A DNA stretch of 6,131 bases from Selaginella moellendorffii (lineage: Eukaryota > Plantae > Lycopodiophyta). How positions within the stretch are numbered: the first letter of the stretch is position 1; every line of letters starts with the position of its first letter. Below, one piece after another: positions 1 through 6,131 of this stretch. The position numbers and the translations under genes are program-made. The notes beneath the pieces were generated by a model. It was given only the letters and a program-made list of their open reading frames with translations. It did no database searches and was not told the DNA's origin. The stretch is taken from assembly GCF_000143415.4 (NCBI RefSeq), contig NW_003314709.1:1-6131 (forward strand). Direction: 5' to 3'.

Positions 1-5
1 AAAAG

Positions 6-60
<55 letters not shown>
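1..60. repeat. Poly(A) tract (59 A plus one G), open at the window edge
   Basis: Read directly from the sequence. Its origin (retroposon tail, homopolymer microsatellite or read artefact) cannot be determined from this window. Confidence 0.95.
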
Positions 61-62
<2 letters not shown>

Positions 63-197
63 ACGCCGCGAAACCAGGGGAAACTACCGGGACCTTAATA
101 TACTTACAATGTCAATGTAAGGTGTGTTTGTCAAATTGTGTCATTAGTTAGTTATTAACTAGGATATAAGTCACAAAGAATGTGTTGTGACTGTCAC

Positions 198-475
198 CAC
201 GTGGCATGGCAAGCAAGTCCAAACATATGTATTTCACATGGCATACAAGGATGCTAAACTCTAACTATGAGAACAAGCCAAAGGGCATGCCACGTGTCAA
301 TGTGACACACATTGAAAACCATAAAACTCACCAAAGCACATGCCACGTGTCAATGTGGCACACATTGAAAACCATAAAACTCTGAGCACAAACCAAAGTG
401 CATGCCATGTGTCAATGTGGCACACATTGAAAACCATAAAACTCTATGAGATCAAACCAAAGGCCATGCCACGTG
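198..475. promoter_or_regulatory. Cluster of G-box/ABRE-like motifs
   Basis: CACGTG occurs at 198-203 (CACGTGGC) and at 291-296, 344-349 and 470-475 (each GCCACGTGTC), with a decayed CATGTG copy in the unit at 401. These match plant bZIP/bHLH G-box/ABRE consensus; function is not shown. Confidence 0.45.
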
Positions 476-490
476 TCAAAATAAAACTCG
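256..490. repeat. Tandem repeat, 3 full units plus 1 internally deleted unit, period 53-64 bp
   Basis: The core CATGCCA(C/T)GTGTCAATGTG(A/G)CACACATTGAAAACCATAAAACTC starts at 286, 339 and 401. A copy at 465 lacks the middle portion. Linkers share CCAAAG. Confidence 0.92.
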
Positions 491-862
491 GATATATCCA
501 GGGCCAGACACATCTGGGGCCCGGCATATCGGGTGCCCGACATGTACGGGGCCCGACATATCGGGTGCCCGACATGTCCGGGGCCCGATATGTCTAGGGC
601 CGGATATATCGGGTGCCCGACATTTCCGGGGCCGGACATATCGGGGCCCGGACATGTCCGGGGCCGGACATATCGGGTGCCCGACATGTCCGGGGCCGGA
701 TATGTCCGGGGGCCCGACATATCGGGTGCCCGACATGTTCGGGGCCGGAGATATCGGGGCCCGGACATGTCCGGGGCCCGATATATCTGGGGCCCGACAT
801 CTCTGGGGCCCAACATATCGGGTGCCCGACATATCCGGGGCCCGACATGTCCGGGGCCGGAT
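491..862. repeat. 16-bp quasi-palindromic minisatellite, 23 units plus a 3-nt partial unit
   Basis: Units GACATGTCCGGGGCC(C/G) and GACATATCGGGTGCCC are in register from 491 to 859, with one 17-bp unit at 699-715. The last unit is cut after GAT (860-862) by the LTR terminus. Confidence 0.95.
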
Positions 863-1785
863 TGTAAGGGACTAAATTTTCCATTTTACTTTAGTCACTT
901 AACCACATGTCTGACCACTTGGAGGAGTCTCATTCACAACCTCCATAAGTCCAACTCAGGACTTGGGGCTTGCTAGCCCCGAGAATGGCATCCATGCCAC
1001 TCAACCTTAGCACTTGGTCCAAGTGCTCCACGTGTCCGATCCCATGATCGACACCCCAAGGTATCACCGATGTACCGGCCCGTTACGCTAAGGCCATGCC
1101 CATTTACCTTGGTCACACTGGTGGTCCAACACCACTTGCATCTCCGTCTTGGCCCTCCAAGACTAGGCAAACCATCCCTGAGTGGTCATCTCAGATCCAC
1201 TCCTTAGCATCCTTAGGATGCCCACCGACAAGGGGAATAGCCTTCCCCAATATCCCTCTGTCAGTCCCCACTAAGTCCCTTTCTGCCCCTGGCCGTGTTT
1301 GCCAACACTGCCACTGGATCGAGACCCACAGGCCTGACCACTAAGTCCTACGGTCCTCTGGGACTTCCTCACCACACGACTGTGTCCTTGGTCACTACCC
1401 CAGAGGACTGCTCCTCTTCCTTTCCACAGTCTGGGCCTTTGGGACAACATTTCGGAACACCGTGGCCTTACGCGAGCCACCTGGGTACTCTCCCCACCTA
1501 TCGCCTTTAGGTGCTCTAGCCATGGGCTTAGAGCGAGGTTCGGTTGAGCCACGCCTGGTATCCAAGTAGGTAGTGCCACCCACACTTGGACTGGGAGCAT
1601 CGGCCAGTCGATCTCCCGGAGGAACTAGAGCCGGCTCTTGAACACTTCACCAAGCTACCCCGCTTGTCGGTCTGTGTTCACTCTAGTCTTGGACTTCCCA
1701 GTGGGTAGCTCATCACCCAACACTGGGTCTGGCCTTCCTAGGCCAAACTGGCCTTTCCTGGCCAAACTGGCTCCACTGCAGTCCT

Positions 1786-1797
1786 CCCCCTACTATA
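1786..1797 (-). promoter_or_regulatory. Degenerate TATA-like motif of the LTR (TATAGTAGGGGG)
   Basis: Resembles the TATAAATAGGGG-type motif common in plant LTRs. It lies ~70 bp downstream (minus strand) of the tandem arrays, which would place them in U3. The match is imperfect. Confidence 0.35.
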
Positions 1798-1866
1798 CTT
1801 TTGGGGCTCACCAAACCCCCCAGGGTCTGGGAGACGAACGCTTTGGGCTTTCACCCTCTCAGGCTC

Positions 1867-2040
1867 CGGACTCGGACTCGGACTCGGACTCGGACTCGGA
1901 CTCGGACTCGGATTCGGGCTCGGACTCGGGCTCGGGCTCGGGCTCGGTCTCGGCCTCGGCCTCGGTCTCGGTCTCGGTCCCGATCTCGGTCTCGGTCTCG
2001 GTCTCGGTCCCGGTCTCGGTCCCGGTCTCAGTCTCGACTT
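1867..2040. repeat. Hexamer microsatellite (CGGNCT)n, 29 units, inside the LTR
   Basis: In-register units: CGGACT x7 (1867-1908), then mostly CGGGCT, then mostly CGGTCT/CGGCCT/CGGTCC to 2040. Confidence 0.97.
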
Positions 2041-2483
2041 CGGACTCCATCTCGGACTCCATCTCGGACTCCATCTCGGGTCCATCTCGGACTCCATCTC
2101 GGACTGCATTTCGGGTCCATCTCGGACTCCATTTCGGGTCCATCTCAGGTCCACCTCGGACTCCACCTCGGACTCCATCTCGGACTCCATCTCGGGTCCA
2201 TCTCGGACTCCACTTCGGACTCCAACTCGGGTCCATCTCGGGTCCACCTCGGACTCCATCTCGGACTCCATCTCGGACTCCATCTCGGGTCCATCTCGGA
2301 CTCCACTTCGGACTCCAACTCGGGTCCATCTCAGGTCCACCTTGGACTCCATCTCGGACTCCATCTCGGACTCCATCTCGGGTCCATCTCGGACTCCACT
2401 TCGGACTCCAACTCGGACTCCATCTCGGGTCCATCTCGGACTCCATCTCGGACTCCATTTCGGACTCCAACTAGAGTCCATCT
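2041..2483. repeat. 11/12-bp minisatellite (38 monomers) containing three 93-bp higher-order repeats
   Basis: Monomers are CGGACTCCATCT (12 bp) and CGGGTCCATCT (11 bp) and their variants. An 8-monomer block (5x12 + 3x11 = 93 bp) repeats at 2135-2227, 2228-2320 and 2321-2413. Confidence 0.95.
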
Positions 2484-2720
2484 TGGACACTCCCACGTGT
2501 CATGTGTTGGTCCTTTTGGGTCCCTTTTTGGAGCCTCACCTTTTGCTCGCTTCGTGCTCGTTCCTCGAGCACTTCGTTGGGAGTTCCACTCCCGCTCTTG
2601 ACTTTTCAAGTCGGAGCTTTTGGTCCAAACGTGTTACGCTCGTTTGGCTCTCGCTTCGGCCACTACCATGTGGCGCCCTTCCGGCTCCACTTTGGGGCCT
2701 AGGGATTTTGTGTCTCACAA

Positions 2721-2731
2721 CTCCACCACCC
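2721..2731 (-). other. Polypurine tract (GGGTGGTGGAG) immediately 5' of the LTR
   Basis: The minus strand reads ...ATGAGGACATCGAACTTCGTCTATGGGTGGTGGAG-T-TGTGAG. This G-rich tract sits 1 nt before the LTR TG and is absent before the copy at 5818. Confidence 0.75.
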
Positions 2732-2764
2732 ATAGACGAAGTTCGATGTCCTCATCGAACGGTA

Positions 2765-2864
2765 NNNNNNNNNNNNNNNNNNNNNNNNNNNNNNNNNNNN
2801 NNNNNNNNNNNNNNNNNNNNNNNNNNNNNNNNNNNNNNNNNNNNNNNNNNNNNNNNNNNNNNNN
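2765..2864. other. Assembly gap (100 N)
   Basis: Exactly 100 Ns, the usual placeholder for a gap of unknown size. Contiguity and orientation across it are not guaranteed. Confidence 0.98.
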
Positions 2865-5817
2865 CATGCCTTGTCCATCCTTTAAGGAGCGTAGTCTCTC
2901 CAACTTAGAGACTGATTGGACCACATGTAATGGTTCTCTCCTTTTATTGGTTTAGTTTTCGCTAAACCTCTTAGAGACCCTTCTCTAAGTCAATCCCACT
3001 ACTCCTTCTCGAGTAGTCTCAATTTCCATCGATATAACCTTTGCACTTTGGAACTTTGAATTTTGACTTCTTGGAGTCAATTTCCTAGGTGTCTCCAACA
3101 CCTTGCATTGCACAGTTTGTGCGACTCCACTTCCCTATCCTAGGAAGTTCATTACTTGAGGGCACCATCATCCTCTCTTCTATTTCGTGCCACCTTGGGC
3201 ACTAAGTTCCATTTATCACACTTTGTGCTAGGGTTGTCCATCGCCCTATCATTTGGCTACCTTACCGCTCCCTCCCTTGGAGCTTCCACTTTCGCCAAAT
3301 CGGAGCAATTCGGAATCCCTCCTTGGAAACACACTTCCTTTCCCGCAACTTGTTAGCGTCCAACACATTAGTGTTCCTCGCCTAACTTTGTCACTTGGAT
3401 TCCTTCCAAGGGATTCCACGGCCCTATCTTGGCCACTCATCTTTTGCTCCTATCCGTTGATTGTTGCACCAAGCAACATCAAATCTCTACCTCCCTCCTT
3501 GAGGTATTGTTTCGGTTCCATAGCAAAGACTCTTCTTTACCAAGTCCGGAGGATGTTCACCCCTAGTACGTCTCTTTAGCATCTTCTGCTATGGGCTCTA
3601 TCCACGGCCCAACTTCGTGACCCTCCCATGGGTCTTTTATAAAGATTACTTTCCTCGGACTCACTATGCCATCGCACGGACATAGTTTATTTCCCTTAGG
3701 TGCTCTTCCCACTTGGTTATCACGACCAAGCCACACCACCTTAAACAGTTCAATTTCAACATTTTGAACCAGGAACTTCATTCCTTAGCCAACCAAGGAC
3801 CTTGTCCCTTTCTGGCCATAAGATCACCTAGTGATCTCACCTTGGCACCTTAACAGAGTTGCCAAGAGGTACTTGGTTTTCTAGACCTCCAAGTTGTTGA
3901 CTATAACCCCGGGGGCATCCCCCACACTTGGCGGTGCACCCAAGCTAGCCCTTACGGCCAAGGGTTCATAGCAACTGAGATTAGGTGTCCCCATCTCACT
4001 CACCACGACCTTGGTGCCACTTGCACCAAAGTGTTCAAGTTAGATATGCTGAGCTTTCACACTAAGCAATCTAACCGTGCATCACGACTCCGAGGCATCC
4101 CTCGCTTGGCGGTGTGCCCAAACCAGTCTCCCCACTGAGAGTCCATGACCACCGAAATATGAGTGTCCTCATATTCCAAACCATCACCACGCCCTAGTGA
4201 TTTGGGACTCGAACCCAAGCACTAGAGGGTCGGGACTCGAACCCAACCTCCGTATATGCATCTACGGACGGCATCACACAAGATGCCTGGCGTGACTCCC
4301 CACGCCGGTGCACCAACCTATTTTTAAAGCGCGCTACAGATCACAGCTTAGGAACCTAGTTCCTCCACACTGCCAAGTCCTCTCACTTGACATGTCTGTG
4401 ATCATGCATGGACTCCTCCATGCTCGGCCCCCTGGCCCACCCTTTTTGAAGATATAACCTTCAACTAGGGTCTTTGTTCCCCTGACGTGCCAATCTCACT
4501 TGGCAAGTCCTCCGACCTTTGTAACATGGTTCCTGCATAAGCGTGAAAGTCCTTGACCATCGACTTTCGTTCAAAGCCCTCTCTTTGAACACTCGGGAAC
4601 TACTTCCCTCACCTTGATAACCTTGCCTCATGGCAAGCTTCAAGACCACGCTCCTGCTGCGCCACTCTGATTTCGCGCGTTCCATGAACCATTTACACTT
4701 GGCCTTTTTAGGTACTACGCTACCTAAAATCGTCTTTGGGAACCTTGAAGGAACTCTGTCCCTCAGCTTGCTAAGGCCTCCCCTTTCGCAAGCTTTATAG
4801 TTGCCATATAGTCTAACATGGACAATTCCATATTTTAGACTCTCTATGGCATCACGGTTGCTAGCAACAACATCCTCGAGCACCCTCTTGATTCTCCACT
4901 CCCAACTTTCATAACCACTGTTGGATATGCCCTTTGATTTCTATGGTTCGGTTCCATCCCAACATTACTTGCCTTTGGCTTCACACCTTTCCTTCGGTCA
5001 TTCTCCTCCAGACCAGGAGGATAGCTTTGCACTTTCTATCATGCCTTAGCAAGTATTCTTAGGGATGAACCTACCCAATAGCCCAGGGAGTGGTTCCTCA
5101 ATCCGGGTATGCTCAGCTTATAATCCCACACACTAGGGTTACATTGTTGCTTATGGGCCTTTACATGCCCATCACTAGCCTTGCCAAAATTCCATTTTTG
5201 GCTTTGTCCAACTTGGGTAGACAGTCCTCTCCTATCTCCGCAACCTTGGACATTTGGATAGCACCTTCTATCCATCATTCGCTAGGGACTTAGTCCCTTG
5301 GGCTTTATCCATTGCCCTCGCGACATCAAACACCACCTTCTGGTGTTCTAGAGTGTTCGGGTGTCCCAATGATGGCTTTCTTGACAATGAGTATTTCCTT
5401 TTATGACATTGACTTACTATATCGCAACATAAGCAACTTATCCCCCATAAGGGTATATCCGACTTCCCTATACTAGAAGTCTTGGGTAGCTACCTTCTAC
5501 CCGTTTAACCAGTTATTTTGCACCTCTTGCTTAGTTGCCTCATAGTTGTCAAGTCCTACAAATCATTGCTTGGTGCTTTCACACCTCCATCACTATCTGG
5601 GTCACCACACTCCAACTGCATGCTCTGCAGCTTAGGCTATGCCATTCCCATTTCCATTGGGATTCCTTTGGCAAGGGGTTCTCATGAACCCACCAACATA
5701 GCCTCAAGGTATCACACCTTGGCACATTTGGTGTCTCCACACCATCGGCTCCACGAGCCTACCTCTATGACATTTCCCTTCGTGTCTAAGTCTTTGCCAA
5801 GACCAACACCGCTCTTT
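2865..5817 (-). mobile_element. Probable internal region of a degenerate or non-autonomous LTR retrotransposon (no intact gag/pol)
   Basis: Lies upstream (minus strand) of the PPT/3' LTR across the gap. The minus strand is visibly purine-rich, like retroelement sense strands. The longest ORF is 140 aa, and no intact RT YxDD, protease DTG/DSG or integrase motif was recognised. Linkage to the 863-2719 LTR is inferred across the gap. Confidence 0.55.
3780..4505 (-). other. Structured RNA domain (cis-element candidate) within the internal region
   Basis: Near-continuous stems, a duplicated fold with compensatory changes (3896-3998 vs 4077-4175), and several plus-strand C-A mismatches that are G-U pairs on the minus strand. 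Confidence 0.6.
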
Positions 5818-6063
5818 TGTGAGATACAAAATCCCTAGGCCCCAAAGTGGAGCCAGAAGGGCGCCACATGGTAGTGGCCGAAGCGACAGCCAAACGAGCG
5901 TAACACGTTTGGACCAAAAGCTCCGACTTGAAAAGTCAAGAGCGGGAGTGGACTCCCAACAAAGTGCCCGAGGAACGAGCACGAAGCAAGCAAAAGGCGA
6001 GGCTCCAAAAAGGGACCCAAAAGGACCAACACATGACACGTGGGAGTGTCCGAGATGAATCCG
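5818..6063 (+). mobile_element. 5' (U3) end of a second LTR of the same family, opposite orientation
   Basis: 5818-6057 is the reverse complement of 2479-2719 with 8 substitutions and 1 indel by manual alignment (~96%). It starts TGTGAGAT, with no PPT upstream (preceded by GCTCTTT). Similarity fades after one minisatellite-like unit at ~6063. Confidence 0.9.
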
Positions 6064-6131
6064 CTTGCCAGTCTCAGCGAGCGGGATAGCTGCACTGCCG
6101 TCTTCGCCCAACTTGCCGGATGGTTTTTTTT

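Follow-up and report, generated by a model that had tools for sequence, protein, structure and literature searches.

A duplicated four-way-junction fold in a hairpin-saturated, non-coding repeat of Selaginella moellendorffii

Structured signals in non-coding mobile elements

Among described systems, those closest to the locus considered here are the non-autonomous LTR retrotransposons, including LARDs such as Sukkula and TRIMs such as Cassandra, which combine a multi-kilobase non-coding interior with strong predicted RNA structure and a long repeat-rich block beside the interior. The structured internal domains of these elements are believed to be recognised in trans, for RNA packaging or pairing, and such signals have, to our knowledge, been worked out in detail in no more than a handful of retroviruses and yeast elements. 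Packaging and dimerisation are associated with clusters of short stem-loops in the leaders of retroviruses and LTR retrotransposons, the Ty1 5′ domain being one example (PMC5454406). Template switching also creates hairpins, and yields apparent compensatory changes (PMC8794818). What share of the apparent ‘compensatory evolution’ of RNA stems is owed to template-switch mutation and not to selection is an open question, and it is one on which the present locus bears, in that it shows selection-like and template-switch-like signatures side by side.

The locus lies in a 6,131-nt stretch of S. moellendorffii DNA (NCBI RefSeq assembly GCF_000143415.4, contig NW_003314709.1, positions 1 to 6,131), the whole of which is referred to as the window. 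Within it, a structured module occurs as two diverged copies, A and B. The locus resembles LARDs and TRIMs in its non-coding interior, its predicted structure and its repeat-rich block, but differs from them in that the window contains no direct LTR pair, its sole long repeat being an inverted pair of 242 nt, in that no primer-binding site was recognised in the window and in that no target-site duplication is visible there. Moreover, no sequence relative was found in the metagenome, prokaryote, viral and protein collections searched, and such a density of perfect short hairpins is not known to be a feature of LARDs. The sequence-only reading had placed the fold in the interior of a retroelement; given the inverted long repeat, the lack of a recognised primer-binding site and the blank Pfam search described below, that placement is not supported, and a retroelement-like identity of the locus is unproven. 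What the module itself has in common with the retroelement leaders is a cluster of short hairpins together with a multi-branch domain, both on the purine-rich, presumed sense strand, and one apical loop is identical in its two copies. A kissing-loop signal is not conserved, since the loop of arm 2 contains a self-complementary 6-nt palindrome in copy A and none in the homologous loop of copy B.

The surrounding repeats

The interior that holds both copies (2865-5816) is pyrimidine-rich on the plus strand, a composition skew which makes the minus strand the purine-rich one, and it is saturated with hairpins, containing 60 perfect hairpins with stems of at least 6 bp as against 6.1 ± 2.9 in shuffles. 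The arms of the inverted repeat lie at 2479-2720 (left arm, plus strand, 242 nt) and 5817-6057 (right arm, minus strand). They were identified by repeat search (repeats I1 and I5, 95-98% complementary), self-BLASTN and alignment, and differ by 8 substitutions and 1 indel when aligned arm to arm. As the window consists of two contigs joined by 100 N, the orientation of the arms could be a matter of assembly. To the left of the left arm is a repeat-rich block (61-2478), in which four tandem arrays accompany a unique stretch (860-1860) that is dense in hairpins, with 17 compared with 2.6 in shuffles. Block and arm together (61-2720) form a candidate long terminal repeat, for which the TG at 61-62 and the CA at 2718-2719, both read from the sequence, constitute weak evidence, as does an 11-nt, mostly purine run on the minus strand (2721-2731) that adjoins this block at its TG end.

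No gene of the element was recognised, which leaves no gene breaks to be counted. A Pfam search with 43 open reading frames (at least 30 aa, both strands) gave no match with E below 0.2, the open reading frame landscape is random-like, the window contains no trace of reverse transcriptase or gag, and the interior has no gag/pol coding capacity. Word-indexed protein searches, which covered proteins 0.55-1.75 times as long as the query, were blank, and exact look-ups of one open reading frame on contigs and of ten further ones among proteins returned nothing. An exhaustive protein search gave two hits, both of them translated satellite repeats and irrelevant here. No copies outside the locus were found in pattern scans of metagenomes, prokaryote genomes and viruses.

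Geometry of the module

The four-way junction of copy A, made up of a closing stem and three arms, occupies 3896-3975 on the minus strand, as given by isolated RNAfold, by columns 25-104 of the RNAalifold consensus and by a covariance model; by the same three approaches, that of copy B occupies 4077-4152, also on the minus strand. The covariance model was built from A and B, and scores them at 113.5 and 107.2 bits, respectively. The closing stems (3901-3907/3964-3971 in A, 4082-4088/4141-4148 in B) carry one bulged C each, at 3967 and 4144. Arm 1 is found at 3911-3923 in A and 4092-4103 in B, arm 2, with a loop of 8 nt in each copy, at 3927-3944 and 4105-4122, and arm 3 at 3950-3963 and 4127-4140, where RNAfold favours a shifted register in both copies. 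The helices, the bulged C and the positions given for them in the sequence-only reading were all confirmed by reading the sequence, and the three C-A mismatches that it listed in copy B (4085/4145, 4081/4149 and 4105/4122) are all present.

Adjoining each junction is a hairpin, likewise assigned to the minus strand in copy A (3976-3998; perfect 6-bp stem, pair probability 0.92 in context) and in copy B (4156-4175; perfect 8-bp stem, 4-nt loop, pair probability 1.00). The apical four loop bases of these two hairpins are the same in A and B (4/4). Beyond them, a minus-strand motif common to 3999-4010 and 4183-4194, read from the sequence and aligned in the unit alignment, extends the duplicated unit beyond the minus-strand module at its 5′ side. 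The spacer between the copies (4011-4076, minus strand) contains two more hairpins, at 4011-4029 and at about 4038-4076; nothing corresponding to this spacer follows copy B, and it shows no conserved structure in the unit alignment.

In its overall form the module is like tRNA in having a four-way junction of ~70-80 nt. It is unlike tRNA in the consensus geometry, in which a bulged closing stem of ~14 bp is joined by arms of 3-6 pairs that abut one another with almost no linker nucleotides and end in loops of ~3-4, 8 and 5-6 nt. ARAGORN found no tRNA gene in the whole window, and Rfam 15, searched at E ≤ 10 over 3800-4450 with permissive filters, returned no tRNA, SINE, snRNA, ribozyme or convincing snoRNA match; nor did the Rfam ribozyme families match anywhere in the window at E ≤ 1. 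The proposal that the fold is a tRNA mimic is thereby rejected, ARAGORN and the Rfam tRNA model being blank and the stems and loops differing in size from a cloverleaf, and the earlier statement that no named motif is recognisable holds.

Evidence for a shared fold

Copies A and B are 59% identical in a MAFFT alignment made from sequence only. Self-BLASTN at E ≤ 0.01 does not link them, and significant sequence similarity between them is confined to a core of ~30 nt. In the RNAalifold consensus of the minus strand, all 31 pairs are intact in both copies (62 of 62 cells paired, none broken); eight pairs are altered on both sides, while six are altered on one side by way of wobble pairs. As proposed from the sequence, therefore, the diverged copies keep their helices through matched changes. 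Shifting the partners by 1-3 columns, as a register control, lowers the pairing to 31-44%. Against column shuffles the consensus has a z-score of −6.16 on the minus strand, where none of 300 shuffles is as good, and of −2.43 on the plus strand, such that the fold is clearly better on the minus strand. The consensus energy of A with B is −32.95, compared with −6.0 ± 3.6 (best −19.2) for A with 354 other windows; the energy of the shared fold is better than that of shuffles and of this background.

The same strand preference appears when each copy is folded alone. On the minus strand both adopt the same topology, with z-scores of −3.08 (A) and −2.54 (B), single-copy values that do not surpass the average of the window (about −2.4), and on the plus strand the scores are −2.17 and −1.50. 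For the 280-nt span they are −5.82 on the minus and −2.79 on the plus strand, and at 3946-4066 G-U pairs shift the minus-strand score from −1.58 to −3.37. The closing stems span ~70 nt and, in copy B, need wobble pairs that are found on the minus strand only.

There are limits to what the pair of copies can tell. With two copies only, the eight matched changes are inseparable from a few events, and loops are overall not better conserved than stems (50% vs 65% identity). In genomic context a stable junction is predicted for copy B only: the junction of B has pair probabilities of 0.70-0.93 in contexts of 400-900 nt and is stable in every context tried, whereas in copy A those of the closing stem and arm 2 are near 0 in the same contexts. 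Another diverged duplicate in the same interior (4582-4640 and 4733-4795) has no common structure (z −0.9 and +0.1), from which it follows that retention of structure is specific to the A/B module and not automatic at this locus.

A proposed structural module of a non-coding RNA

The best explanation, which we hold tentatively, is that A and B represent a structural module conserved in a minus-strand RNA that is non-coding and retroelement-like. A segment of ~181 nt was duplicated in tandem within a long non-coding repeat saturated with hairpins, and the module of ~100 nt in each copy has diverged to its present identity with every base pair retained. In the minus-strand direction the module presents a short hairpin with an identical apical loop in both copies and then the four-way junction, with its bulged closing stem and three arms. 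Constraint would act on the single-stranded minus strand, most likely on its transcript, and the module may serve as a structural unit acting in cis, analogous to the structured domains inside non-autonomous LTR elements. Transcription of the minus strand is presumed for this locus, a role in packaging or dimerisation is conjectural, and the pairs of A and B, although only two copies are available, may be kept by selection and not by mutation. As to the interpretation first put forward, the duplicated fold, the matched changes, the preference for the minus strand and the lack of a named motif have stood; the tRNA mimic is rejected and the retroelement interior is not supported.

In favour of this RNA module are the intact pairs, the minus-strand z-score of the consensus, its energy gap to the background, the unstructured second duplicate and the stability of copy B, to which may be added the local gain from G-U pairs at 3946-4066, the strand-specific hairpin loops described below, the lack of coding remnants and the purine run at 2721-2731. 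Against it are the existence of two copies only with no family copy in the collections searched, the unfolding of copy A with its flanks, the locus-wide symmetric Watson-Crick signal, the tiny mismatch counts, the level of loop conservation and the unproven retroelement. If copies from a family were to confirm covariation, the RNA of a non-coding mobile element would be seen to carry, in this module, a structural signal that is well defined and open to testing; should such copies show no covariation, the module would amount to an ordinary local duplication, and the repeat around it, though unusual, would be without function.

Template switching and other explanations

The main rival is that the fold is a DNA-level by-product without RNA function, in which polymerase or reverse-transcriptase template switching continually makes and re-homogenises short inverted repeats. 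Both arms of a stem then change in one event, imitating compensatory substitution, and A and B would be a local duplication whose hairpins are kept perfect by switching. This is a real possibility, if a somewhat doubtful one, and much of the wider locus is of the kind described for template-switch hairpins (PMC8794818), being rich in short, perfect inverted repeats and showing apparent compensatory changes. Perfect hairpins that do not overlap number 101 in 4546 nt, ~10 times as many as in shuffles, spread alike through the interior, the arm and 860-1860. Their stems end abruptly, only 17 extending across one mismatch, and most arms of A and B are perfect Watson-Crick stems in each copy. The locus-wide excess of structure is, moreover, Watson-Crick in nature and equal on both strands, with z-scores of −2.53 on each without G-U pairs, which make the scores weaker, not stronger; indeed, a locus-wide wobble signal on the minus strand was sought and not found, and the A/B region is not exceptional in folding energy within the locus. 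Mismatches that interrupt stems favour C-A over G-T by 4:1 or 5:2 across the locus, numbers too small to decide the matter.

The perfect, strand-symmetric signal expected from template switching is thus a property of the locus as a whole, but not of the A/B closing stems. Copying would yield perfect complements, and so the bulged, wobble-dependent closing stems, with their common bulge, their ~70-nt reach and the minus-strand wobble pairs of copy B, speak against it. The other diverged duplicate did not retain homologous hairpins, and the hairpin loops are strand-specific in composition (on the plus strand G is absent from 58 of the 101, vs 33 expected), a bias not predicted by a DNA process that treats both strands alike. 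Nor does template switching by itself predict a density of one hairpin every 45 nt across several kilobases.

A bolder form of the RNA-module explanation is that the locus represents a new architecture, of which the two modules are the best-preserved pieces. The element would be non-coding and several kilobases long, its RNA would consist of upward of 100 short perfect hairpins in a row with loops poor in C on the minus strand, and within it the four-way-junction module with its fixed-loop hairpin would be under selection at the RNA level as a new cis signal. This we consider unlikely.

Less probable still, and distinctly so, is that both modules derive from a small structured RNA gene in its own right, or from a fragment of tRNA or SINE origin, which was carried into the repeat or duplicated within it; they would then be no signal of the surrounding element. 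The compactness of the multi-branched module, and its presence exactly twice, are what such a gene might give, and a tentative lead in the same direction comes from two 28-nt direct repeats (4187-4242, repeat family D7), just upstream on the minus strand, whose hairpins may be T-arm-like. The blank ARAGORN and Rfam searches and the departure from cloverleaf stem and loop sizes argue otherwise. Furthermore, as the flanks are equally hairpin-dense, no insertion boundary is visible around the modules. That the junction is a self-cleaving ribozyme, whether of the hairpin or twister-sister type or akin to the hammerheads of some non-coding retroelements, has in its favour the four-way topology, found as it is within a non-coding repeat, and the earlier suggestion; it is very improbable, given that no Rfam ribozyme family matches even at the permissive threshold and that hardly any nucleotides of the junction are left unpaired, with next to no internal loops, to form a catalytic core. 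Scarcely credible, with nothing found in its favour, is a decayed gag/pol or other coding sequence with helices arising by chance, a reading rejected on the 43 open reading frames without Pfam match, the random-like map of these frames and a common fold far beyond chance.

Minor observations

A third copy of the module in the window was considered and rejected, the A+B covariance model retrieving A and B only; its other, spurious hits fall in a GC-rich array that is palindromic, and to this palindromic array are also owed, as artefacts, the Rfam miRNA hits below threshold at 527-855. A decayed satellite of ~180 nt was also rejected, sequence periodicity being absent outside the A/B pair; there is a weak peak in hairpin spacing at 177-179 nt, with sequence periodicity at that lag around A/B only. 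Finally, the 28-nt repeats at 4187-4242, each of which forms a hairpin inside a hairpin, belong to a run of six consecutive hairpins (4176-4340), and their fold has z-scores of −3.49 on the minus strand and −5.50 on the plus strand.

A fold shared by two diverged copies

All of the helices quoted in the sequence-only reading are found where it had placed them, in copy A (3896–3998) and copy B (4077–4175) of a module of some 100 nt, in which an adjacent hairpin accompanies a four-way junction made of a closing stem and arms 1–3. The bulged C lies in the closing stem of each copy, and in copy B the three C-A mismatches are likewise located as described. Folded alone as the minus strand, each copy adopts the same topology, a hairpin and then the four-way junction, with z-scores of −3.08 (A) and −2.54 (B), where the plus strand gives −2.17 and −1.50; over the 280-nt span the values are −5.82 (minus) and −2.79 (plus). 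The RNAalifold consensus on a structure-blind MAFFT alignment of the two copies (59% identity) contains 31 pairs with 62/62 cells paired, of which both sides have changed in 8 and one side, via wobble, in 6. As a control on this consensus, sliding the 3′ partners by 1–3 columns left pairing at only 31–44%. The comparison of folding energy with shuffles that had been proposed, along with RNAalifold, also favours the fold: the column-shuffle z of the alignment is −6.16 for the minus strand, with 0/300 shuffles doing as well, and −2.43 for the plus strand, with 4/300. Moreover, the consensus energy of −32.95 compares with −6.0 ± 3.6 when copy A is paired with 354 other 100-nt windows, the best of these outside the copy B neighbourhood reaching −19.2. 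The A/B observation is confirmed, in other words, and lies beyond chance. The duplication has a period of ~181 nt, and its unit reaches, via a short common motif, to ~4010 and ~4194, past the bounds first assigned to the copies; a covariance model built from both found no further copies in the window.

Significant sequence similarity between the copies is confined to a ~30-nt core (score 29 vs 14.8 ± 2.2), and self-BLASTN of the window does not link them. Identity is 50% in loops and 65% in stems, the loops overall being not more conserved; the only two conserved loops are the apical loop of the adjacent hairpin (4/4) and that of arm 2 (6/8). For arm 3, RNAfold prefers a shifted register in both copies. 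In contexts of 400, 600 and 900 nt the copy B junction has pair probabilities of 0.70–0.93, and those of the copy A closing stem and arm 2 are ~0, because their strands pair with 4003–4008 and 4307–4346 instead.

Structure of the surrounding locus

The A/B fold is far from being the only structured part of the locus. Indeed, the mean z of sliding 120-nt windows over the whole window is −2.35 (plus) and −2.53 (minus). Counted as perfect stems of at least 6 with loops of 3–12, against dinucleotide shuffles, hairpins number 60 (vs 6.1 ± 2.9) in the non-coding interior (2865–5816) that holds both copies, 17 (vs 2.6) in 860–1860 and 8 (vs 0.6) in 2479–2764. Non-overlapping hairpins amount to 101 in 4546 nt (860–1860, 2479–2764 and 2865–6123), evenly distributed and at about ten times the level of shuffles. 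The signal is Watson-Crick and strand-symmetric, the mean z without G-U being −2.53 on each strand and weakening to −2.21 (plus) and −1.99 (minus) once G-U pairs are allowed. Stems across the locus end abruptly; in those interrupted by a single mismatch, C-A stands to G-T as 4 to 1 or 5 to 2, depending on the way of counting, numbers which are too small to carry weight. The loops are strand-specific, in that 58/101 lack G on the plus strand (33 expected), where the loop bases are C 37, T 31, A 20 and G 12%. None of the mechanisms tested accounts for both the strand-equal excess of hairpins and the G-poor plus-strand loops, and the context of the module is both unusual and unexplained.

The interior offers an internal control in a second diverged duplicate, 4582–4640 / 4733–4795 (period ~152 nt, local score 36), whose two copies have retained no structure in common (z −0.9 and +0.1). 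Retention of homologous helices is thus a specific property of the A/B module. Six hairpins in a row occupy 4176–4340 (z −5.5 plus, −3.5 minus), among them two 28-nt direct repeats at 4187–4242, each a hairpin within a hairpin. The minus-strand loop of the latter has what we take to be a resemblance to a tRNA T-arm; ARAGORN and the Rfam tRNA model found nothing at 4187–4242. Separately, a decayed satellite is ruled out as the source of the interior, since sequence periodicity is absent outside the A/B pair.

Origin and identity of the module

The reading that we tentatively prefer is that a conserved structural module belonging to a non-coding, retroelement-like RNA of the minus strand underwent tandem duplication, and that constraint on the single-stranded form would have kept the fold in both copies; its role would probably be that of a cis signal recognised in trans. 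The main rival is non-functional and serious, if somewhat the more doubtful: template switching, which creates inverted repeats and imitates compensatory change (PMC8794818), would make and re-homogenise inverted repeats at the locus. The perfect, strand-symmetric stems agree with such a process, but the wobble-dependent closing stems spanning ~70 nt do not, nor do the strand-specific loops, nor the loss of shared hairpins from the duplicate at 4582–4640 / 4733–4795.

That the module is instead an independent small RNA, or a tRNA- or SINE-derived piece, appears improbable. The tRNA mimic put forward in the sequence-only reading finds no backing: no tRNA or tmRNA was found in the window, no Rfam 15 family matched in or near the A/B region at E ≤ 10, and the junction differs in its dimensions from a tRNA cloverleaf. 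The same Rfam search is in line with the remark that the fold is not recognised as a named motif. A ribozyme is very improbable, no ribozyme model having matched, and decayed coding sequence is scarcely credible, with 0/43 ORFs (≥ 30 aa; interior, right arm and 860–1860, both strands) matching Pfam at E below 0.2.

Membership of a retroelement is not established. Counted for it are the purine richness of the minus strand, the absence of coding capacity, a repeat-rich block (61–2719) with TG and CA ends and, adjoining this, an 11-nt run, mostly purine on the minus strand (2721–2731). Counted against it, the only long repeat is inverted and the window holds no reverse transcriptase or gag trace. 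Judged by eye from the usual start of such a site, no primer-binding site is recognised. The interior ORF map is random-like, and no recognisable genes of an element lie within the window. Exact look-ups of 11 ORFs gave no match, nor did word-indexed searches among proteins of 0.55–1.75 times the query length; an exhaustive protein search returned only two irrelevant matches, both translated satellite repeats. Patterns copied from the window were without match in metagenomes, prokaryote genomes and viral contigs. The earlier interpretation is, overall, partly supported, and the unnamed module is probably a new addition to the structured cis modules of non-coding mobile-element RNAs.

Layout of the window

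The 6131-nt window is made up of two contigs with 100 N between them (2765–2864), opening with A60 (1–60) and closing with T8 (6124–6131), and resembles a small scaffold whose two contigs each break at a homopolymer. Its left part comprises tandem arrays at 263–508, 497–858, 1867–2105 and 2040–2488, together with a unique stretch (860–1860). The first array is built of 3–4 repeats of 53–62 nt, a CACGTG core and a 7-bp inverted repeat being present in each, and looks like a repeated regulatory box. The second, a GC-rich and itself palindromic array with a 16/48-nt period, reaches z as low as −9.7; it gives rise to spurious A/B covariance-model matches and to the only Rfam matches elsewhere in the window, which are spurious, sub-threshold miRNA models. 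In the remaining two the period increases towards the left arm of the inverted repeat, from 6/12 nt (1867–2105) to 12/35/93 nt (2040–2488).

This left arm, a 242-nt segment at 2479–2720, is present inverted at 5817–6057 with 8 substitutions (7 transitions) and one indel, the arms flanking a 3.1-kb interior. An RNA covering both arms would pair into a long duplex. The left arm has the same polarity as 860–5816, the right arm being the inverted one, and the inverted orientation may come from sequence misoriented across the N gap. The right arm contains a single degenerate array unit, followed by unrelated sequence.

The plus strand of the interior is pyrimidine-rich (A 22, C 30, G 17.5, T 30%). 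CpG is depleted (observed/expected 0.4–0.5) and CA and TG are in excess, a pattern such as is seen in methylated eukaryotic repeats. Near-identical short hairpins or motifs recur 1.9–2.3 kb apart (3126–3148 / 5458–5480 and 3834–3851 / 5711–5728), and among interior pentamers CTTGG is 8-fold and CCAAG 5-fold over expectation.
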